Below, in pieces: positions 30,649 to 45,981 of a stretch of DNA of 64,000 bases. This DNA is from Bugula neritina (lineage: Eukaryota > Animalia > Bryozoa), in contig OZ037771.1 of NCBI GenBank assembly GCA_964035545.1, forward strand, positions 15,161,289-15,225,288, given 5' to 3'. The notes beneath the pieces were generated by a model. It saw only the letters and a program-made list of their open reading frames with translations. It searched no databases and had not been told where the DNA came from. The translations under genes and the position numbers were made by a program. The stretch's first letter is position 1, and every line of letters begins with the position of its first letter.

Positions 30649-31528
30649 TTAAGAAAAAATAATAACCACTGACACAATGATGTAGCCCTGAAAATCAACC
30701 CTCTTTATTACCTGTATCAACTGGATATCTTGATTGACATATAAATAAAGGGGTAGACAACTTATATACGTTGGCCTGTAACAAAGCGGAAATAGAATAA
30801 TCCAAGTGTTGAAAACATAAGCCTGTATCTGTTATAAGTTATAACTCAATAGCAAAAGCAAAACATGTCTAAGCTTTTTAATGTAATCAATTTCAATGAT
30901 AGTTTCAAGCACTGTCAGAATTTGTTACTTGTCAAAAGAAAAGTTTTACTGCCGTTCATAAATTTCATAAAACTTTATATAAACATAAAAGCTCCCATAA
31001 GAAGACAGCTACCACATCTCACGGTTGCAACAGTCTTAGTTGCTATCTTTTGACTCTATATTCTGTAAAGAATGCGATTTATAAAGAGCTGGAATTATAA
31101 TTCTGTTCTGTAAATATATCAAGCAATATAATACATGACGCACGAATTCGAACATCATTATGAATTTAATTAGCTTCATAAGCTGCCATTGGATATGAAG
31201 TTATCAACATACTACCTTAACAAACAGCTAAAAGGGAAGATATTACTTTCAATTAGCCTTCTAAGGCTGATAGCCAAATGAGTAGCACCTAATTATGTTT
31301 AACATGTACTGTTTTACTTTCATGCTCTATTGAATGAGATATTATATGGCTTGCTCTCCTCCTAGCGCTCAGTCCAGCTTTTTACAATTAGGCAGATTTG
31401 ATATAAATTAGCAGCAGCTTAACTTATTGGCATCCTTATATTAGCACTTTACCTGATGACAAGACCGTATAAAACACAATAGCTTTGCAAACCAAAGCAG
31501 TTTAGAGACGTGAAGAAGAGCTGCCAAG

Positions 31529-34500
31529 ATGGGTGCATGGAACCAGTTGGCTCTCTGGTATATAGTAGCAGCAGGTGGGTGGTTATGAGATATACACAGA
31601 GTCTCTACCAGCTGTAGTATTCACCAATCATTGGTCTGTTTAGTAAACATTCACCAATCATTTGTCTGTTTAGTAAACATTTACCAATCATTTGTCTGTT
31701 TAGTAGATCTTCACCAATCACTTGTTTGCTTAGTAGACATTGGTCACTTTATATGCAATGATGTGATACATTCAATACTTTCTTGTATGTTTTGGTTTAT
31801 AAAGCATGCGAAGTGAACATACAAATATAGACTGGTAGATTTCAATGCAATTATTAATGCTTCATTAACATTTGCAGTTTATCCTGTCCCAAAAACCTTT
31901 AGGGCATGTGAAACAATGGTCACTATTTTATAGCCAATCAAAAATTATTATTTGGGTAAATATTAATCATTAATTTGTTGATTACAAACTTCTAAATGTT
32001 TATGTTTGACTTTAACAAACATAAAATTTTATTAGAGGTAAATAATTTGCATTAGCATCATTTTAGCTGTACTGCCTGGTAACAGAGCAGTCCAATACAC
32101 TTATGGAGAAAAGGGAAAAGACCCGTGTTTGACTGTTGATATGTCAATGAACTTCCAAATAGTATATACGGTAAGCAGTTACTCTCAGTGTAACAATATT
32201 GCTAGTAGTACTAAGTATTGAGATATTATAAAACTTTGCCCCCACTGAGATTTGAACCTGATGTAGTGATGAGTTTACCCAGCGGTCCCCGTGTCGTAAT
32301 CGTTAGCACACTTGCTTGCAAGTCGGAGGTCTCAGGTTCGATTCCCAGTGGGGGCAAAATTATTTTTCAAGCTATTTCAGCCTTTAGTGAAGTGGAGTAG
32401 TACTCCGAGGGAGTTGAAGAGCTAGGGGAGCCTGAAAACTGAAGGAGTAGTGGATAGGCCAGTGGAGTTCAGAGAACTGAGTGGGATGTAGTGATGAGTT
32501 TACCCCGTGGTGTAATGGTAGCACACTTGCTTGCAAGCGAGAGGTCTCAGGTTCGAATCCCAGTGGGGGGCAATTATTTTTCACCTGAGACATCTGGCTT
32601 GCAAGCAGGTGAGCTAACCATTACACCACAGGGGCCATACTGGGTAAACTCAACACTGCATACAAGCAGAATGAAAGTCTACTGAGAATTCAACACAGAA
32701 GCATATTTCTGTTAGCTCTACACATGAGTATGTACTCATTCTAGGAGCAAGATTCTATCCTATTGATGAAATGTTTCAGGCAAGGCATGGACTTCGGGAA
32801 GTGTTCGAATTTGATCCGGAATACACAAAGATTGAGAACATAACAGGAAGCTGTCGCAGCAAAGAGCTCAGAATAACATATGAGTCAGTTATCAAGTACC
32901 TCAACTTTGCCATTACAGAAAATTCTACCAACCCGAACTCTGGACTAGATATTTCTTTGGCCTACAATCCGCATGAAGCATTCTTATCAATTGAAAGTGA
33001 GTTACTATAACTATATTATATTCTTCACAATTTCAAAAAATTTCAATTTTAACTAGGTTTGAACAGTGATTAGATAGTATTTTGGCTTAAATTTCATATA
33101 GGAAAATCCAGTTTTACAAAATCAGGAATAAATTTACTTTCAAATTTATAATTTGTTTTTTTTTTCTTTTTAGAAAATGAGCAAAAAACAGTTTTTCTAA
33201 ACAATCCATTGCCACTTGCTCCTTATGGTGCATCAACAACTTGCAACGAAACTCAAAATCTGGCGTTAGGCCCATATGTAAGGCTATCCATCAACTCTAT
33301 GAGAGTTCATGCCAATGGTATACAAAACAAAGGCTTCAATGTATCACAAGGTTGGTCTACACTCTACAGGATATAAGAAATAAGACGCTGTGTTTGGCAA
33401 ACATTAAATACTAGTCCTATACAAGTCATTTTTATGGTAATGTGAAATTGATGTTTGTTAAGTACAAGCTGTGGGCTATGCCAACTCTATTTTTATTTTA
33501 AATAGAGTTGTGTGGAAATACCAGTTATCCAGAGAAAATTCTCCCCACAAGACCCAGTTGGTGGTACACAACCAAAACTGCAAGACCCAGTTGGTGGTAC
33601 AAAACCACAGCTGCAATACCAAGCTGGCGGTACACAACCACAGCTGCAAGACTTACTCAGGAGCACACAACTAAAACTACAACACCCAGTTGGTGGTACA
33701 AAACCACAGCTGCAAGACCCAGTTGGTGGTACAAAACCGCAGTTGCAAGACCCAGTTGGTGGTACAAAACCACAGCTGAAAATTCTACTCAGGAGCACAC
33801 AACCAAAGCAACAAGACCCAGTCGGTGGTACGCAACCACAGCTGCAAGACCCAGTTGGTGGTACACAACCACAGCTGAAAATTCTACTCAGGAGCACACA
33901 ACCAAAGCTACAAGACCCAGTCGGTGGTACGCAACCACAGCTGAAAATTCTACTCAGGAGCACACAACCACAGTTGCAAGACCCAGTTGGTGGTACAAAA
34001 CCACAGCTGCAAGACCCAGTTGGTGGTACACAACTAAAACTACAACACCCAGTTGGTGGTACGCAACCACAGCTGCAAGACCCAGTTGGTGGTACACAAC
34101 CAAAACTGCAAGACCCATTTGGTGGTACACAACCACAGCTGCAATACCAAGCTGGCGGTACATAACCACAGCTGCAAGACTTACTCAGGAGCACACAACT
34201 AAAACTACAACACCCAGTTGGTGGTACAAAACCACAGCTGCAAGACCCAGTTGGTGGTACAAAACCACAGCTGAAAATTCTACTCAGGAGCACACAACCA
34301 AAGCTACAAGACCCAGTCGGTGGTACACAACCACAGCTGCAAGACCCAGTTGGTGGTACACAACCACAGCTGAAAATTCTACTCAGGAGCACACAACTAA
34401 AACTACAACACCCAGTTGGTGGTACAAAACCACAGTTGCAAGACCCAGTTGGTGGTACAAAACCACAGCTGCAATACCAAGTTGGTGGTACGCAACCACA

Positions 34501-35778
34501 GCTGCAAGACCCAGTTGGTGGTACACAACCACAGCTGAAAATTCTACTCAGGAGCACACAACTAAAACTACAACACCCAGTTGGTGGTACAAAACCACAG
34601 TTGCAAGACCCAGTTGGTGGTACAAAACCACAGCTGCAAGACCCAGTTGGTGGTACACAACTAAAACTACAACACCCAGTTGGTGGTACGCAACCACAGC
34701 TGCAAGACCCAGTTGGTGGTACACAACTAAAACTACAACACCCAGTTGGTGGTACGCAACCACAGCTGCAAGACCCAGTTGGTGGTACACAACCAAAACT
34801 GCAAGACCCATTTGGTGGTACACAACCACAGCTGCAATACCAAGCTGGCGGTACATAACCACAGCTGCAAGACTTACTCAGGAGCACACAACTAAAACTA
34901 CAACACCCAGTTGGTGGAACAAAACCACAGCTGCAAGACCCAGTTGGTGGTACAAAACCACAGCTGAAAATTCTACTCAGGAGCACACAACAAAAGCTAC
35001 AAGACCCAGTCGGTGGTACACAACCACAGCTGCAAGACCCAGTTGGTGGTACACAACCACAGCTGAAAATTCTACTCAGGAGCACACAACTAAAACTACA
35101 ACACCCAGTTGGTGGTACAAAACCACAGTTGCAAGACCCAGTTGGTGGTACAAAACCACAGCTGCAATACCAAGTTGGTGGTACGCAACCACAGCTGCAA
35201 GACCCAGTTGGTGGTACACAACCACAGCTGAAAATTCTACTCAGGAGCACACAACCAAAGCTACAAGACCCAGTTGGTGGTACACAACCACAGCTGAAAA
35301 TTCTACTCAGGAGCACACAACCAAAACTACAACACCCAGTTGGTGGTACAAAACCACAGCTGCAATACCAAGTTGGCGGTACATAACCACAGCTGCAAGA
35401 CTTACTCAGGAGCACACAACTAAAACTACAACACCTAGTTGGTGGTACAAAACTACAGCTGCAAGACCCAGTTGGTGGTACACAACCAAAACTACAAGAC
35501 CCAGATGGTGGTACACAACCACAGTTGCAAGACCCAGTCGGTGGTACGCAACCACAGCTGCAAGACTTACTCAGGAGCACACAACTAAAACTACAACACC
35601 TAGTTGGTGGTACAAAACCACAGCTGCAAGACCCAGTTGGTGGTACACAACCAAAACTACAAGACCCAGATGGTGGTACACAACCAAAGCTACAAGACCC
35701 AGTTGGTGGTACAAATTAAAGCAATTTGCTCAGTACTATTTCAATATCAACAATCTAACCATAAATCAATACTCTTAA
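31529..35778 (+). CDS. Secreted single-LAMP-domain protein with about 66 11-aa repeats (TTTAARPSWWY type), 938 aa, 5 exons
   Basis: Exons 31529-31574, 32067-32170, 32780-32996, 33174-33350, 33506-35778. Intron phases 1,0,1,1 and four Cys match the N-terminal domain of the LAMP at 41569. No transmembrane segment before the stop. Confidence 0.85.
32262..32583 (+). mobile_element. Full-length TRIM (322 bp) with tRNA-like LTRs, nested in an antisense solo LTR of the same family (about 32227-32659)
   Basis: LTRs 32262-32369 and 32487-32583 (TG...CA). Perfect CCTGA TSD (32257-32261 / 32584-32588). Purine-rich tract AGAGAACTGAGTGGGA before the 3' LTR. Pol III A/B boxes in the LTRs. Confidence 0.85.
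33550..35714 (+). repeat. Coding 33-bp tandem repeat with a 693-bp higher-order duplication
   Basis: 11-codon period; shadow-frame ORF boundaries recur at exactly 693-bp offsets (34165/34858, 34436/35129). Confidence 0.9.
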
Positions 35779-36314
35779 AATTCTTTCTCTACTGCTTGAT
35801 GCTATGGTTGCTATTTTGACTTTTGCATTTCTATTTCCTCAAAGAAAAATTGTTTTATGCTAATTATTTAATCTACACATAAAGTTTGTGTTTTCAGTAT
35901 TTATCATTTCAAATTAAGTTCAATTCAATAAGAATTATGATGCACCATTTCAAATTATGATACTTGAAATCATAAAGCATTGAAATTTTCATCATTGTAA
36001 CAAATAAACTGGTTTAAATACGGCACAAATAAAGGATATAACAATGTATTACTTTTAAAAGTGAAATTATTAAAGCAACAGCACACTTCAAACTCTAGCT
36101 ATGATGTGATTACAATCTATTCAATACATGAAACTTTAAGGAGCTCAGTTTAAAGATGAGACAACTCTGTCATATATAAAACATGGCTAGCCGAAATACA
36201 GTTGGTTCAGCATTGAGAAGATGACACAGTGACTAAAGAGAGTAGATTTGACAGGGGAGGATAAGTACTATTTCAAGAACACCATGTAGGGAAGATAACT
36301 ACATCTTGCCATCA

Positions 36315-38341
36315 TTATGCTAAATCATCATCATCAAACAAGTCTCCAAAATCTGCAAACAAAGCAGAAAGCAAATTTAATAAGTGTTGACATTTGTAAA
36401 CACATCAGAGCTGAGCTATGTAAGGTAAAAATCACTATGAATACAATCTGCAAACCACTAAAATCAAAATCATTTAGAAAATGCAAAACTTGCTGCTTTT
36501 ACACCAACATATCATGGATTAGTAAATAAGTTTTCATTAACATAAACTCAACAAGGAAAAATTTCCTATGAATTTCACAGATAAAAGATCTGCATAAAAA
36601 TTAAGCTTAAGCAAACATGTAGGTAAATAATCTGCTATGCATTTTAACCATTAATAACCTAGCGTCAACATCAACTGCTCATTTTACTCAGCAACGATAT
36701 TCTTTGAGTTGGGAGACATAAAATAACAACTCACTGTCATCAAAGTCAGCGTGAGCTGCGGGTGTTGGTTTACCTAGCGTCTCTCTCAGAGCTCCACTGT
36801 ATCCTAGCAACTAAAGTAAACAAATGTCCTTTTATGTAACAAAACAACTGGCAAAAATTTAAATGTTAGATGCAAGTTTTAGCATTGCATAGCATAGAAC
36901 AGCAAAGTGTAAGCAAAACAGGTTGAATTTCAATGATATTTAAAAACAAAAGTCTGAAATGGTGGCATATATTCTTTGCATGTTACATTGTAAACCGATG
37001 TGGTGATTACTAAGTATACGCCAACATAATGGAGTATTAATACTAGCCATGGAGCTTGCATGGAGTACTAACAAATGGTAATTACAATCAGTATGACTAT
37101 GTTTAATATTACTAGCACTCAGCCTATTTCTTCATTTTATTTATTTACTTAAATAACCATATGCCACTGCAGATGTAGCTATTCATTCACTTATACTATT
37201 TTAATAATTTTACTTTAGGTTATAGGAATTCAATAATAAATCAAAAATTAAAATAATTATAGTAATATATATTTATGATATGTATAGTCCTATAAAATAC
37301 CTCAAATTTAGTAGCTGTTTTAACTTTACAGTAAAACAAAAAGGATATAAATAGTGTGGCATGAATATTGGCCCGAGTTTAATTCTGAGTATTTTTCAAA
37401 AACTTTTTAATGAGCATAATTGGTAATAGAAATATAAAGTTTATCATCACAATAACAATTTAAAACTAAAATTTGTCATGTTTGCTTTGTCTACACCAAT
37501 AGGAGTTGCCACCTCCATACTGATACTCATAGTCATAATGATAGCCCTGCCCTTGGACATCAATACTATAGTACACAACAATGATAATACTGGTACTCAT
37601 AGTAATAGTTAGTAATGTACGTTATCATTATAATCATCTTTATAAGTTACAGAGTTCTATAGTAGTTGTCATAAAGATTGCTGGAGTGATATGTTAGTCT
37701 CAATCAACAACCAAAATAAAATTAACACGAACTCAAAGTGAAACTTTAACTGTAACTGGTAATTTAAAGTTAAAAGACTTTAGATTCCCAACCCAATCTC
37801 TAAATTCAAGATAAAGATCAACTAAACATTCATAATCGAATTGATGTTGCAATTTCATTCCCATGCCATGATAGATGTTAGTAGCAATAGTATTGTATCG
37901 ATTTGAAGACACTGTGAAGCAAAATATGAAAAAGATAGACCTGAACGAAAATGGCTGGCAAAGAATGACTAAATGGAGAGACAGATAGAGATGTCTGAAT
38001 AAACCAAATTGTCGCACCAACAGAGTCAGGCTGCTTTGATAATGATGATCACTTCATGATGCAATGACAATTTTGGTAGCCTGTGGTGACACTGACATTA
38101 ATGTTCAGTTACAATAACCGTAAGTAACTGTAACGGCAACGAGTAAACGTAATTATAATGAGTAAATGTAGTGACTAATGTCATACTTATAGTTAGGCCT
38201 ATACTTATAGTCATACTCATAGTAATACTCATCAAAACTAACATCTTTTCTTGCCAAAAGTTGAGCTTCTTCTATGTCCATAAATGAGGCTTCCGCGCCG
38301 TCTGGGAACATTTCATCAGCTACAACTACGTTGTTTGCCAT
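36315..38341 (-). CDS. COPS9: COP9 signalosome subunit 9 (CSNAP/MYEOV2) homolog, 70 aa, 3 exons
   Basis: Exons 38341-38243, 36810-36735 and 36352-36315 give MANNVVVADEMFPDGAEASFMDIEEAQLLARKDLLGYSGALRETLGKPTPAAHADFDDNFGDLFDDDDLA. This matches the COPS9 signature DEMFPEGA...HADF..DF.DLFDDDD from recalled family knowledge. Confidence 0.85.
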
Positions 38342-40282
38342 TATAAATATATGATAATATTTCAAATTGAAGCTCAAGCTGTAACAAAGTCGAAATTATT
38401 TTCGATTGCTGTGGGTTAGAACTAGAGGTTTGCTTGACCTTGGAGTGAAACTCAAACTGAAAATACTGGCAAACGCTATAAATATGAAGCCAGTATTAAA
38501 AACTATTGTTTACCGTTGATTTTAATTACTAATTATAAACTACTCTCCTTATTTAACAAGGCAAACTTGGGGTAGGCCGAAATCTTTATTAGTTGCTCGG
38601 TCAACAATTATTGCACGGATGTCGAAAACTTTAAAATAAAACGGAATCTCTAAAGGTTTTTAACCTTAGTTTTTCACGTTATTATATGCAATCAAACGAG
38701 TGTTCATTTTGAGTTCTCGAACAATAACGTAGCCTTGCTTATCGTGTATGTTCCCTTTTCGCTATTCCACCTTGCTATTGTTCCATTTATTAATCGCTCA
38801 TGTGACAGACACGTGATCACAGCTGATCTAAATGCAGTAGATAATAATATTATTGTTATTATTTAAGTTTAGTTTCGATGCTATTATGATTATCACCAAT
38901 CATCATCATGGGTCAAAAGAGAAGGGCAGAAGTTGTAAACTTCAGTTTGTATTTTAGTAACAAGCATTTAATGAGCTTTGCACTAGCGTAATCAAACTTA
39001 AATTAGATAAAATCCCAATAGTTCTTTTCAATAATTTCCATGATGATGATCTATCAATTTGATAACCCAAATATAAAAAAGTTTGGTGTTTCATGATTCT
39101 AATTTTCAACAAAACTGTTAAAGTTTAAACTTTAACATTGAAAATAAAATATTACTATACTTATTGTGATGATCATTGTGATTGTCATAATCAGTATTGA
39201 ACTTGGTATAACTTTTAAGACTAAATGTTCTCCTCATCAGTGTTGTATTTGTAAAAAACAATCAACCTGCTATTCAGTCCTGTAATTTCAACTTCAATGA
39301 CAAATACCTCTTTTTTCCCTATAATATTATTAATAGCTGCTATATTGGGATTTTAGTGCAGACTTTGACATATTGGCCATGACTTTTAGATACTTAGTAT
39401 TTTTCAAATAGACTGGTGTCAATTGAAAGTTGTAGAATGAAGAGTTGTAGATATTATTCAACTTTATTTGCTAGTCCTAGTCATACTAATATTCATAATG
39501 CGACTTCTCTCACTCAAATTGGCTTTACTACATCCATGACTACTGCAATAATCCGCAACTCATTTATTAATTATAATTAATTCACATTTATAGTTCTCTT
39601 CACTGGAGTATATAATATCATTTTCCAACTTGAGTTAGGTTTGATTTACACTTAGGTCTGTATTCCTATATTACTAGTAGAGTATAAATTATCACCATGT
39701 GCTTTTTTCTTAAATCGGGATTTTATATTTAATTGATTTAAAATGCCAAAAATCTTTGTTTATGAAATAGCAGAACAATACCTAGAATATCTAATCAGTA
39801 TATCTTTAGGACTGCTATACATCTTATATGATAAAGCTATTTGTTAGTTACTAAGTTTATTATATCAGTTAGGCATGATATACTATTGCTAGCATTGCAT
39901 CTGACTCAAGTATCAACACCGACTAAACAGCAAATACTTTTTATCAGTTTGGCTAAATAGCTTCAAATTTGCTTTGTGAAATTATTGATGCATATACAAT
40001 CGCGCAGTACCTATGGAATAGTGTATGCAGCATGTGTACAATGTATTTCATGTGATAGCTTTTCATATCAATGTTATTGTTTTTATACAGGTTACAATAG
40101 CTTTTATCTATCTAGTAGTTTATATTACACTAATCACTAACCATATCATTTGATAATATATTCAATACCAATCTTGCATCACATGCTTGTAGTACTTTTG
40201 ATAGGTACTGGACAAGATAGAAACAGATAATAAGGTTATTATTACTATATATATAGTTGTAGTGTATTCAGTCTAAAAATTT

Positions 40283-41275
40283 ACACTGTACTAGTAGTAT
40301 ATTAGTATTACACTGTACTAGTAATATATTAGTATTACACTGTACTAGTAATATATTAGTATTACACTGTACTAGTAATATATTAGTATTACACTGTACT
40401 AGTAGTATATTAGTATTACACTGTACTAGTAATATATTAGTATTACACTGTACTAGTAGTATATTAGTATTACACTGTACTAGTAGTATATTAGTATTAC
40501 ACTGTACTAGTAGTATATTAGTATTACACTGTACCAGTAGTATATTAGTATTACACTGTACTAGTAGTATATTAGTATTACACTGTACTAGTAGTATATT
40601 AGTATTACACTGTACTAGTAGTATATTAGTATTACACTGTACTAGTAGTATATTAGCATTACACTGTACTAGTAATATATTAGTATTACACTGTACTAAT
40701 AGTATATTAGTATTACACTGTACTAATAGTATATTAGTATTACACTGTACTAGTAATATATTAGTATTACACTGTACTAGTAATATATTAGTATTACACT
40801 GTACTAGTAGTATATTAGTATTACACTGTACTAGTAGTATATTAGTATTACACTGTACTGGTAATATATTAGTATTACACTGTACTAGTAATATATTAGT
40901 ATTACACTGTACTAGTAATATATTAGTATTACACTGTACTAGTAGTATATTAGTATTACACTGTACTAGTAGTATATTAGTATTACACTGTACTAGTAAT
41001 ATATTAGTATTACACTGTACTAGTAGTATATTAGTATTACACTGTACTAGTAGTATATTAGTATTACACTGTACTAGTAGTATATTAGTATTACACTGTA
41101 CTAGTAATATATTAGTATTACACTGTACTAGTAATATATTAGTATTACAATGTACTAGTAATATATTAGTATTACACTGTACTAGTAATATATTAGTATT
41201 ACACTGTACTAGTAGTATATTAGTATTACAATATACTAGTAGTATATTAGTATTACAATATACTAGTAGTATATT
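40283..41275. repeat. 27-bp minisatellite (ATTACACTGTACTAGTARTATATTAGT), about 37 copies
   Basis: Direct periodicity, about 300 bp upstream of the LAMP ATG. Confidence 0.95.
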
Positions 41276-41468
41276 GAGATATCAAAAGGGTTGAGTCACT
41301 ACCTCATTGTTAACATAGCTATCTATGCAAAGAACAATGTTATTAGAGTGGTATTCTATATTCAGTAAACTCAGTTTCAGTGATAAACCAATGACATTGT
41401 GCATTGTATCAGCAGTCATATCAGAGCGGGATTTGTGATAACACCATGTTATCTGGTCAATAGTTGAA

Positions 41469-41490
41469 GTCACATGACCTCTTCACATGA
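41469..41490 (+). promoter_or_regulatory. Paired CLEAR/M-box-like motifs (GTCACATGAC, TCACATGA) upstream of LAMP
   Basis: Two TCATGTGA-type E-boxes 80-100 bp before the LAMP ATG; lysosomal genes are known MiT/TFE targets. Confidence 0.5.
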
Positions 41491-41568
41491 TAAAGTATCA
41501 CACTTCAGCTGTTTCATTATAATATTCCTTTAGTTCAACGGAGGGTTTTGAAAGCAACAAACTAGAAA

Positions 41569-42282
41569 ATGGAAAGTTTACAGATTTTACTGATGATCTG
41601 TTGTAAGTTGCAATTTCCTCTTATACATTATACTTATATTATATATAATATTATATTACCTACATTATATTCTGTTATACTATGCCCTGTTCTGTTCATT
41701 TCTGTTATATTCAATTTTACTTTGCATGTCATATTAAACTATAATTTAATATTTTACCATGTTATTCTATATTCCAAACTACTATATTTTATTTCAATTG
41801 CTATATACTTTTTATCATATTCTATTATATTATATTGTGTGGGTCACATATTATATTCTCATTTCATCACTTAGTTGCAATTACTAGTATGTAACTGGTA
41901 AGGATATGTTCTTTTGCTAACGTATTTTATCTAAATTAATAATGCGAGTATTACAGTCGCTGCCTTACATATGTTACAGTCATCACCTTAAGTTCAGGAT
42001 ACACATTTGAGTATACAGATGATGCTGACACATTTGCTTGTCTCAGAGTGAAGTCTAACTTCACCATTGTTATAAACTATGAGGTAATATGGTATCCATG
42101 TTTATATTCATTTGGTGTATTTCTTTAATCTTATGGTACATCAGCTTGAATAATTGGGTCCTATAAGTTGAATTTATTGCTTATAATAATTTAACAAAAG
42201 CACTTATAAATTTCTGATTAGTCACGGATGGTTTTATAAAATTTGGTTTTTATTTGGTTTTGATATAGTAGTAAAAATATCG

Positions 42283-42371
<89 letters not shown>

Positions 42372-42631
42372 AATCTGTGGACAGCAGCTGTTTCGGGATT
42401 TGTCCCCTCATCAGCACAGAACAGAGTACCATGGCCCACACCTTCGCAATAGTAAAACTTATAGTTTTACTAAAGCATATTTAAAAGGTGTGTAAACTCA
42501 AGCCAGAGTGCTCAAGTAACTCTAGGGGTCACCTAGGAGTCACGAGCATTGCAAAATGCTAGCAGCTTGAGTTTGTGACCATGGTGAGAGTGCTCAATCA
42601 TTTAATGTCATTGCTGAGCATTAAATGAGAG

Positions 42632-42707
<76 letters not shown>

Positions 42708-45700
42708 TTAATATGATTTCATCACAATTTCTAAATTAGGAATTCAAATAATCTCAGTACGTTATCATATAGCAACTGTATAATCACCATTCATGGTAAT
42801 TATATAAAGCTGGTTTTCACCTGTTTGCGTGTACCCACCCTTGCTCAAAGGTTAGTGGTAAAGGAAAGACAATTTCTAATAATAATGTGTTTTTACTTCA
42901 GACAAAAGATGGAATGAGATCACAGCCGGTATTGCTAGCCGGCTCAGACGGGAGTGAGGGGTCTTGTGAGACAGAGGGCGGGGGTCCTTATGTGACATAC
43001 ACTCAATACCCTCCTGAATCCGTGGTTACCTCCATTTCCTTCACGTTTGAGAAGTCTAAACAGAATGTTTCCTCGCTAAGTATTAGCCTGACGTATGATC
43101 CACACCTTCTGGACTATTCCATAGAACGTAGGTCCTTCTATCAGTGTTCAGTTTCTTTTTTAATATAGAAAAGAAAACTCCAACTATGACTTAACAATGT
43201 TCAAATAAGGAATCATAGGGTTGGTTGGTTGGTTGCAAGTTGAAAATTGATAAGATTAACCTGTAAAGCTGAAAGTTGTAAGCAGTGGCAGCGTTCACCT
43301 ATGACCTCAAGTGTGAGAAATCGGTACCTCAGATGCTGCTCTTCATTTTAGTTGCTTTTAGAGAAATACTTGGCGTTTGAAAGCTGCCATTCTCAATGGG
43401 CCATTCTAGTTAAGTTAGTAACAGCTTGGGTCGGGAGTAGATTGAGTAGTTTTAGAAGTGTCTTGTCTCTTTTTTCTTCAGTTAACTAGAAGGAAATTCT
43501 TCATCCTAGCAGTTGTAACTGATCAAATTCTAAAGAACGTGACAATTTTATTGCCGATGGAAAAGTTGGTTATAACATTGAGTGATGCACTGGTTTGATT
43601 TCAGCTGAGAAAGCTGTCACGGTTGATTTAGCAAGTCCAATACCTCTGTCAGACACCGGTCACTCTTACTACTGCAACAAAACTCAGATGTATCAGATGG
43701 GAAACGTCACCCTCTCCATCTACTACATGCAGGCTCAAGGATATGGCATGGTTAATGGCACCTTCAGCCCTCCAGCTGGTACGTTATTCAGCCCTCCAGC
43801 TGGTATGCTATGAGTAGTGCTTAAGATGGCAAACGTTTCGGCACTTTCACCAAACACACCATTTTTCATGCCCAGTTTTTTTTCATTCCTACTCTAAATT
43901 TTTATAGTCGAGCTGAATTTAATTGAGTCTTCAAAGACAAATTAATTTTATATTAGTAAATATTTTTCACTACTTTGGCAACAATGACAAAGGAATTTGG
44001 TTTTCTATTCGTGTAAGAGCTGTTACAAATCTTAGATCATTTTTCTTCAAGATCATTGATGATAACATATCGCTCAACTCACTTTGCTGTATTCAATCAA
44101 TGTTTCTGTTTTAGTTGATCATTGTTCACCACATATTTTACCAACTACAACTAGAAGGACCACACCTACTACAAAGACCACACCTACTACAAAGACCACA
44201 CCTACCACAAAAACTACTCCTACCACAAAAACCACACCTACTACAATAACTACTCCTACCACAAAAACCACTCCTACTACAAAAACCACTCCTACCACAA
44301 AGACCACACCTACCACAAAAACCACACCCACTACAAAGACCACACCCACTACAAAGACCACACCCACTACAAAGACCACACCTACTACAAAAACTACACC
44401 TACCACAAAGACCACGCCTACTACAAAGGCCACACCTACTACAAAAACCACACCCACTACAAAGACCACTCCTACCACAAAAACCACACCTACCACAAAG
44501 ACCACACCTATCACAAAGACCACACCTACAACAACTGCAAAGCCCTCAGACGTTGACACTTTTGCCGTGAAAGATGATGGAAAGATCTGTCTATTACTAA
44601 AAGCATCTTTAGAGTTGCACATCAAGTATAAAGTATCTAACAAGGTACTGACTATATCATGTCAATTTTATTATTAAACTTTTATGACTTGTTATATAAG
44701 CTGGATAATTAAATTGCATTCTGTTATTTGAACTTCACTTACTGTCTATTTATCTTACCATTATACCCTTTTACGTGAGCAGACAAAGAGTGTAGACGTG
44801 ACAGCACCCGCCCGACCTCGATTCAATGGTAGCTGTAGCTCCACTATGGACATGCTGGTGATAGAGTGGGAGGATAAAGTAGTATCAGTCAACATGACTT
44901 TGGAGTTTACTAATAGTAGCAGTAACTTCAGTCTCTCTACTGTTGTCATGACTTACACTATACTAGATGATAGTAAGTTTACTAGAGCATAGTAAGTATA
45001 TTAGATGATAGTAAGTGTACTAAGAGATAGTAAGTATACTTACACTAACTTACACTTGTGCTTCATTTCAGAATTCACAGGAAATGCGATGGTGAGCAAC
45101 CTGAGTGATTTCTCCACGCAGCTGGGTAACTACTACTCCTGTGATTCCAGTACAAACATTTCTCTCAACAAAGATGTCTCTCTGTCTATGAAGTCCGTCA
45201 AACTGCAGGTCTTCAGAAATAAAAATGAAACGGGTTTCTACGGTGCAGGTGAGTTTCAGTTGACAGAAATAGGTGACCTAACACTTAACAGTCTGTGTTT
45301 TATAAACTTTCAGCAAAACTTGTGTTTTAGCAAGGAAATATAACACTTACATCTTGTAGATAAGTAGACACTCTATAATATTTAATTCGAGTACATATAC
45401 TGTATTGTGTAAATGTCACAGAACAGCTCCTGAGTTGACACAAACTTACATTTCTGACTCTTTCTGTTCGGTAAATTTCCCTTCTTATATTTTTTTATGA
45501 TTAATTTTCTTTCATATCCATAGAAAGCCAATTGATTGTATAGAAACGTTTGTAGAGTAGTGATTCACTTGCTTCTATTCTAATATCTCCATCATTCATT
45601 TTCCTGCCTTCAATTACAAAGAGACTTATAAAAATTGCATTCAAACAGCCAATAAGATTTATTAGTATAAGCTGTAGTGTTTGCCATGAATTCAGAGTTA

Positions 45701-45981
45701 TCTTTCCTTGAAAACAAGCAATATATGTTGAGAAGACAACTCTATAGCTTGTGGAAGTTACAAGCTATCTGTAGCTTTCACAAGCTATTGAGTTAACATA
45801 TTCATATGATTTACCTACAGAAAACAAGTGCAGTTCAGGGAGCTCAGATAATCCAGTGGACACTGTGATACCTATCGTGGTTGGCTGTGTACTCGGTGGT
45901 CTTGTTATCATCGTTGTCATTGGCTATATTATTGGCAGAAGGCGGGCTAGAGCTCAGAACAACTACGAGACTCTCCCTTGA
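41569..45981 (+). CDS. LAMP: Lysosome-associated membrane glycoprotein (LAMP1/2-like), 531 aa, 8 exons
   Basis: Exons 41569-41602, 41980-42083, 42902-43127, 43605-43778, 44115-44644, 44783-44972, 45072-45248, 45821-45981. Two Cys-paired luminal domains with a (TTKTTP)n hinge. [25 protein letters not shown], tail [15 protein letters not shown]. Confidence 0.92.
42286..42705 (-). mobile_element. About 265-bp ribozyme-bearing element (Penelope-like/retrozyme fragment) between two (TA)n tracts
   Basis: Unique sequence 42369-42634 flanked by (TA)n on both sides and carrying the hammerhead. Confidence 0.55.
42374..42420 (-). ncRNA. Minimal type I hammerhead ribozyme
   Basis: Minus strand TCTGTG-CTGATGA-GGGGACAAATCCC-GAAA-CAGCTGCTG-TC|CACAGA: complete catalytic core, stems I and II, short stem III. 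Confidence 0.85.

Follow-up and report, generated by a model that had tools for sequence, protein, structure and literature searches.

A putative anchor-less LAMP paralogue with a tryptophan-rich repeat array in the bryozoan Bugula neritina

LAMPs are by definition lysosomal type I membrane glycoproteins. The family is characterised by a membrane-proximal domain, a transmembrane helix and a YxxPhi tail, and it is the cytosolic tail that governs sorting (PMC3409847). Pvfp-1, a mussel adhesive of Perna viridis based on Trp, has O-glycosylated Thr and Trp that is both C-mannosylated and 7-hydroxylated (PMC4275877, PMC9418609). We describe here a gene of the bryozoan Bugula neritina that resembles the LAMPs in its predicted N-terminal domain and Pvfp-1 in the composition and style of its repeats. 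The gene occupies positions 31529-35778 on the plus strand of a 64,000-nucleotide stretch of contig OZ037771.1 (hereafter the window, to which all coordinates refer). The window is animal DNA of about 36% G+C, taken from the 216-Mb Darwin Tree of Life assembly of B. neritina, which was built from HiFi reads (GCA_964035545.1). The gene is described in no paper or annotation, and its sole public model is the mis-modelled protein KAF6039563.1.

Our reading, to which we assign a probability of about 0.65, is that this is a functional, protein-coding, fast-evolving and lineage-restricted LAMP derivative of B. neritina that lacks a transmembrane segment. It would have arisen by tandem duplication of a LAMP gene. 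The copy would have retained a signal-peptide-like N-terminus and one LAMP domain of the membrane-distal type, with four cysteines expected to form two disulfides, and would have lost the second luminal domain, the transmembrane helix and the YxxPhi sorting tail. At the place of the short Pro/Thr-rich hinge, the copy would have acquired an array of 2.2 kb whose 11-residue units are built around PSWWYTT.

Two further sequences of the locus were compared with the window. The first (L011) comes from an older draft assembly, GCA_010799875.2, made with Canu from PacBio continuous long reads (CLR) and polished in one Pilon round. The second (L010) is a contig of Joint Genome Institute (JGI) metagenome 3300003318; this contig is in fact bryozoan host DNA. 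KAF6039563.1, which derives from L011, is referred to as P0002 below.

Relationship to the neighbouring LAMP gene

The gene under study comprises five exons and 938 codons. Its introns are all GT-AG, have good polypyrimidine tracts and fall in phases 1,0,1,1 (Table 1). The product of the downstream LAMP gene has a signal peptide, two luminal domains with cysteines, a hinge, a transmembrane helix and a tail ending in YETLP; the (TTKTTP)n hinge spans 44150-44534 with a period of 18 and 21 copies. Exon 7 of this neighbour matched the Pfam family PF01299 (Lamp2-like_luminal) at 29.6 bits (cut-off 27.2) and exon 8 matched PF21222 (LAMP transmembrane segment) at 45.5 bits (cut-off 27). Since both cut-offs were passed, the neighbour is a canonical LAMP. 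Its first four introns have the same phases as those of the gene under study, and its exon 2 is likewise 104 nt long.

When the exons of the two genes were compared one at a time within the window, exon 3 matched LAMP exon 3 (E = 4e-4, 42% identity over 38 aa) and exon 4 matched LAMP exon 4 (E = 3.7e-6, 41% over 51 aa). In the whole 216-Mb genome the sole other match of exon 4 was LAMP exon 4, and exon 3 matched itself alone. Local alignment of the N-terminal 200 residues with the LAMP scored 148, compared with 31 ± 4.9 for 500 shuffles, and brought all four cysteines into register, together with the CNETQ and CNKTQ motifs. The cysteine pattern of the two-disulfide LAMP domain is thus present, and it is kept in L011. 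The initial annotation had noted that exons 2-5 mirror the LAMP in intron phases and in the 104-nt exon 2, and that the two genes share SLAYNPH (SLTYDPH in the LAMP), CNETQ (CNKTQ) and ILPT right behind the closing Cys; all of these features were found in both genes, ILPT shortly past the fourth Cys.

Profile searches of the gene were also done exon by exon, and here PF01299, the profile of a luminal domain of 150-200 aa, gave only weak matches below its cut-off of 27.2 bits. Exon 4 of the window matched profile positions 113-145 (13.9 bits, E = 0.051), and exons 2-3 of the orthologue P0002 matched positions 6-76 (16.5 bits, E = 0.0078). These two sub-threshold matches are collinear on the profile. 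With regard to the beta-prism fold typical of LAMPs, an ESM Atlas model of P0002 residues 20-125 matched a LAMP1 cluster with a TM-score of 0.67 over 103 residues. AlphaFold2 applied to exons 2-3 of the orthologue with a shallow alignment gave a mean predicted local distance difference test (pLDDT) value of 44.7, too poor to use, and searches of PDB sequences with P0002 residues 17-125 and with exon 4 returned chance matches only.

Judged from its sequence, the gene is a tandem paralogue of the LAMP N-domain, that is, of the membrane-distal luminal domain. The matching phases, the aligned cysteines and the collinear sub-threshold profile matches bear out the earlier proposal of a LAMP duplicate. 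The view that only the first luminal domain was retained is supported as well.

The repeat array and the 3' end

The array is built of two kinds of unit, xPSWWYxTTxx (50 units) and xxTQEHTTKxx (15 units), the latter starting with NST in 10 cases and with RLT in five. With the 65 full units and partial 66th listed in Table 1, these counts agree with the initial annotation, which gave about 66 units of 11 residues, about 15 of them of the xxTQEH type and many with an NST sequon. Over about 2.2 kb the array contains zero indels and zero in-frame stops. It encodes 28.5% Thr, 12.9% Trp, 11.9% Ala, 7.9% Ser, 7.1% Pro, 6.9% Tyr and 12.6% Arg plus Lys, has an isoelectric point (pI) of 10.4 and 11 N-glycosylation sequons, and shows a weak higher-order period of 21 units. 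A genome-wide search found the array nowhere else in its own genome. This uniqueness rules out a dispersed satellite, which we had also considered.

The sequence TTKTT-TP-SWWY recurs in many units and amounts to the LAMP hinge unit TTKTTP with SWWY added, and the array begins at the position homologous to the LAMP hinge, just past ILPT. For these two reasons we infer that the array grew out of the ancestral LAMP hinge. The suggestion that the array sits where the LAMP has its hinge holds, and TTKTT(T)P-like motifs remain in it. Exon 5 matched the Mucin-like family PF16058 at 69.2 bits (E = 3.9e-19, cut-off 28.7) and the orthologue matched it at 52 bits, above the same cut-off; the match is one of composition and not of common descent. 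The exon 5 open reading frame (ORF) had zero matches in an index of 5.8 billion proteins. An ESM Atlas feature search with the repeat returned low-complexity look-alikes only, all below 0.9, and a scan of metagenome contigs with the exon 5 ORF gave 18 pattern matches, of which 0 were confirmed.

The opposite strand of the array also holds an open frame of 695 codons (33493-35580, minus strand), which would encode a Cys-rich repeat protein with CSCGCVPPTGS units. That frame lacks both an ATG and an upstream exon, whereas the plus frame joins the LAMP-like exons in phase. Within the PSWWY core it is mainly the third codon positions of Pro and Ser that vary, which fits the plus frame; the same synonymous variants would change residues in the minus frame. 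The antisense ORF was rejected on account of the 27 stops that its frame has in the orthologous L011 array, and we consider coding on this strand extremely improbable.

No hydrophobic stretch was found in exon 5, where the maximum 19-residue Kyte-Doolittle mean was 0.17. PF21222 had no match in the gene under study, and no sequence resembling LAMP exons 6-8, nor any exon like the LAMP second domain or transmembrane segment, was found in 35779-41568. Instead of a YxxPhi sorting tail, the last 21 residues of the frame form a polar tail with no transmembrane helix before it. The L011 frame likewise ends right past its array, with a different tail. The initial annotation held that the gene stops without the second domain, transmembrane helix or YxxL tail, and this is true of the window and of a second B. 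neritina lineage.

The 3' end is predicted from DNA alone, and in every other case a member of the LAMP family is a type I membrane protein (PMC3409847). The product might therefore still be anchored, through a splice donor in or after the array leading to an unrecognised transmembrane exon, or through a C-terminal lipid anchor. The interval up to the LAMP speaks against such an exon, as do the matching end of the orthologous frame and the COPS9 gene, which converges tail to tail on the repeat gene about 530 nt past the stop, with both candidate polyadenylation motifs inside the gap. Since the tail is not hydrophobic, a glycosylphosphatidylinositol (GPI) signal is unlikely. We therefore give an anchored product little credence. 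As predicted from the gene model, this LAMP offshoot is without two of the features that define the family, the membrane-proximal domain with its transmembrane helix and the sorting tail.

Orthologous loci, selection and neighbouring features

An exhaustive protein search with exon 3 returned one cluster, consisting of a 54-aa JGI metagenome fragment (P0001) and P0002 (KAF6039563.1, a B. neritina 'hypothetical protein'); a protein search with P0002 residues 17-125 gave zero matches. KAF6039563.1 (329 aa; L011:10001-13791) has a different first exon, skips exon 4 with the third Cys and terminates within the repeat, past a 1-nt frameshifting deletion. Gene order in L011 is that of the window: a gene with astacin, CUB, EGF and MAM domains, two small genes, the repeat gene, COPS9 and the LAMP. 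Introns diverge from those of the window by 14% in L011 and 11% in L010. The three sequences represent three lineages, which probably belong to the B. neritina cryptic-species complex.

In L011 the five exons, the splice sites and the four cysteines are all intact. Its array has about 32 units, compared with 65 in the window, and its minor units are NPSGWSTTVAT and KPSGLSTTVAT in place of xxTQEH, while L010 has units of the TTKTT type. The PSWWYTTK core is present in the arrays of all three lineages. Read-derived contigs of one DNA run agree with the window over its unique parts; the flanks were confirmed and no joints were seen.

Over 193 codons of the luminal domain, the comparison of the window with L011 gave 0.256 synonymous (dS) and 0.082 non-synonymous (dN) substitutions per site, a dN/dS of 0.32. 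Of 63 changes, 28 were synonymous and 35 non-synonymous, where 22% synonymous would be expected under neutrality (binomial p = 8e-5). The corresponding dN/dS of the neighbouring LAMP was 0.11. Changes assigned to the window lineage comprised 11 synonymous and 5 non-synonymous. By this codon comparison, the luminal domain is under purifying selection.

A decaying partial duplicate that has lost its function or never gained one, and in which the hinge has become a neutral 33-nt minisatellite that is open only through recent expansion, would account for part of these data, and several observations favour it over a functional gene. In L010, a 56-nt frameshifting deletion in exon 3 removes the second Cys (L010:864-1028) and exon 4 carries a 21-nt in-frame deletion; the repeat gene may be a pseudogene in that lineage. 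The L011 array has two 1-nt deletions in homopolymer runs, which may be assembly errors, given an assembly from PacBio CLR and Canu with a single Pilon polish. In a young 33-nt repeat, freedom from stops has no significance of its own, and two of the six frames are open across the window array. Array length and unit types turn over rapidly between lineages, introns are nearly as well conserved as exons, and non-synonymous changes are in excess among those specific to L011 (7 synonymous, 12 non-synonymous) and to L010 (3 and 5). In a search of sequencing runs the locus appeared in one DNA run and in no RNA run. The protein collections contained no transcript-derived protein for the gene, which does not show that it is silent.

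Other observations speak against decay. At 0.32, dN/dS falls significantly short of 1. Identity to the LAMP is only about 40% in the best exons, yet the four cysteines, the splice sites and a 938-codon frame survive, and all exons are intact in L011. The promoter is conserved, and the variation at Pro and Ser codons of the repeat motif is synonymous. We consequently regard decay as unlikely. For the lineage of the window, 'repurposed', the term used in the initial annotation, is to be preferred to 'dead' because of the purifying selection on the domain.

Table 1. Coordinates of the repeat gene, its parts and nearby features in the window.
Feature	Position	Strand	Remarks
TATAAA box	31468-31473	+	~55 nt 5' of ATG; motif and ~100 bp around it conserved in L011
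Exon 1	31529-31574	+	ATG and first part of signal-peptide-like hydrophobic N-terminus; 14/15 residues identical in L011, GT donor kept
Exon 2	32067-32170	+	104 nt; holds first Cys of LAMP-type domain
tRNA-like SINE units in intron 2	32240-32660	.	Outside the coding sequence; insertion shared with L010, very high word depth
Exon 3	32780-32996	+	Second Cys and ISLAYNPH motif
Exon 4	33174-33350	+	Third Cys, in CNETQ
Exon 5	33506-35778	+	Array and tail; TAA at 35776-35778
Exon 5 head	33506-33549	+	Fourth Cys, NTS sequon, ILPT
Repeat array	33550-35727	+	65 full 33-nt (11-aa) units and a partial 66th
C-terminal tail	35714-35778	+	21 aa of non-repeat sequence and TAA; not hydrophobic; differs in L011
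Two AATAAA motifs	36003-36033	+	Candidate polyadenylation signals, 225-250 nt past stop
COPS9/MYEOV2 gene	~36310-38380	-	First coding exon matches PF15004 (E = 1.6e-4); small COP9 signalosome subunit
Canonical LAMP gene, parental type	41569-45981	+	Eight exons, ~6 kb downstream of the gene under study

Intron 2 of the repeat gene contains two tRNA-like units of a short interspersed element (SINE) and an inverted partner. Word depth in read-derived contigs was about 38,000 in this region and about 100 in its flanks, which points to a very abundant repeat family; ARAGORN called no tRNA in the region. Because L010 carries the insertion at the identical site, the insertion is older than the separation of the window and L010 lineages.

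Three further observations concern the surroundings of the LAMP. A 20-residue stretch at 38635-38694 (+) resembles the CNKTQ...YYMQ segment of LAMP exon 4 (9/20 identical, in-window E = 0.019); it has stops on both sides and is probably a chance match, a relic exon being conceivable. A 27-nt tandem repeat of 36.9 copies with 97% matches occupies 40281-41275, just upstream of the LAMP promoter region. In LAMP intron 2 an inserted element lies between two perfect (AT)n microsatellites, at 42285-42368 (42 repeats) and 42636-42705 (35 repeats).

Predicted product and comparison with known systems

If the gene is functional, its product would enter the endoplasmic reticulum, be heavily N- and O-glycosylated and follow a soluble route, and its end point would be either secretion or luminal storage in a granule or lysosome-related organelle. 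Secretion is suggested by the signal-peptide-like N-terminus together with the missing anchor. LAMPs are sorted by way of their cytosolic tail; since the predicted product has none, it would be expected to be secreted by default or kept in the lumen of a granule. The luminal domain has five N-glycosylation sequons. Most likely the repeat would form an extended polymer of basic, mucin-like character, in which the many aromatic side chains serve to bind a partner. That partner could be cuticular polysaccharide or chitin, a surface, or further copies of the repeat.

The protein is a possible candidate for a material or adhesive role. A secreted, heavily glycosylated, basic polymer rich in Trp and Tyr might be used as a structural material or an adhesive, whether in the larval cement or in a chitin-binding cuticle matrix, a role that we find doubtful at present. 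The extracellular adhesive or structural role put forward in the initial annotation is speculative, and so is the cation-pi cohesion or coacervation proposed there for the repeats. It was further proposed that the protein possibly works with the EWH proteins and the astacin as one secretory system. Nothing beyond conserved gene order speaks for this, and synteny in closely related genomes does not demonstrate a common function; this partnership is likewise speculation. A search of the literature on B. neritina adhesive proteomics found nothing relevant. Should a material role be true, the approximately 100 Trp residues would be functional, perhaps modified as in Pvfp-1. The protein would then be the first known case of a material protein with a lysosomal membrane glycoprotein as its ancestor and, outside molluscs, one of the rare adhesives based on Trp.

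An anchor-less paralogue under selection would indicate that the membrane-distal LAMP domain can be used alone in a soluble secretory route, and the locus would be a clear example of how a large repeat domain can grow from a short O-glycosylated hinge. Among fouling organisms B. neritina is a major one, its adhesive and cuticle proteins are scarcely characterised, and a basic, mucin-like protein with 13% Trp is a concrete candidate for work on them.

The likeness to Pvfp-1 is one of composition and repeat style only: both have basic, Thr-rich short tandem repeats with Trp, and not 3,4-dihydroxyphenylalanine (DOPA), as the prominent aromatic residue. Pvfp-1 has no detectable homology to the bryozoan protein, no LAMP domain and a collagen-like trimerising end, and PSWWYTT does not contain the WxxW-type motif for C-mannosylation (PMC8433626). 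With mucin-like Thr-rich repeats (PF16058) the array has its Thr-rich composition in common; 13% Trp and 7% Tyr are not mucin features. CD68 (macrosialin) and LAMP-3 (DC-LAMP) likewise have just one LAMP domain, joined to a long, O-glycosylated region of mucin-like type. In these proteins, however, the order is reversed, with the mucin region N-terminal and the LAMP domain membrane-proximal; a conserved transmembrane helix serves as anchor, and the mucin regions are not Trp-rich.

The closest comparison is with LAMP-1 and LAMP-2 (PF01299 and PF21222). The bryozoan gene shares with them the homology of the membrane-distal domain, the four cysteines, the N-glycan sequons and a Thr/Pro-rich region of O-glycosylation type after the domain, and it shares intron positions and phases with the neighbouring bryozoan LAMP. 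It differs from LAMP-1 and LAMP-2 in having no membrane-proximal domain, transmembrane helix or YxxPhi tail (PMC3409847). The hinge measures about 30 residues in vertebrate LAMPs and about 130 in the neighbouring gene, whereas here about 720 residues of Trp-rich 11-mers stand in its place.

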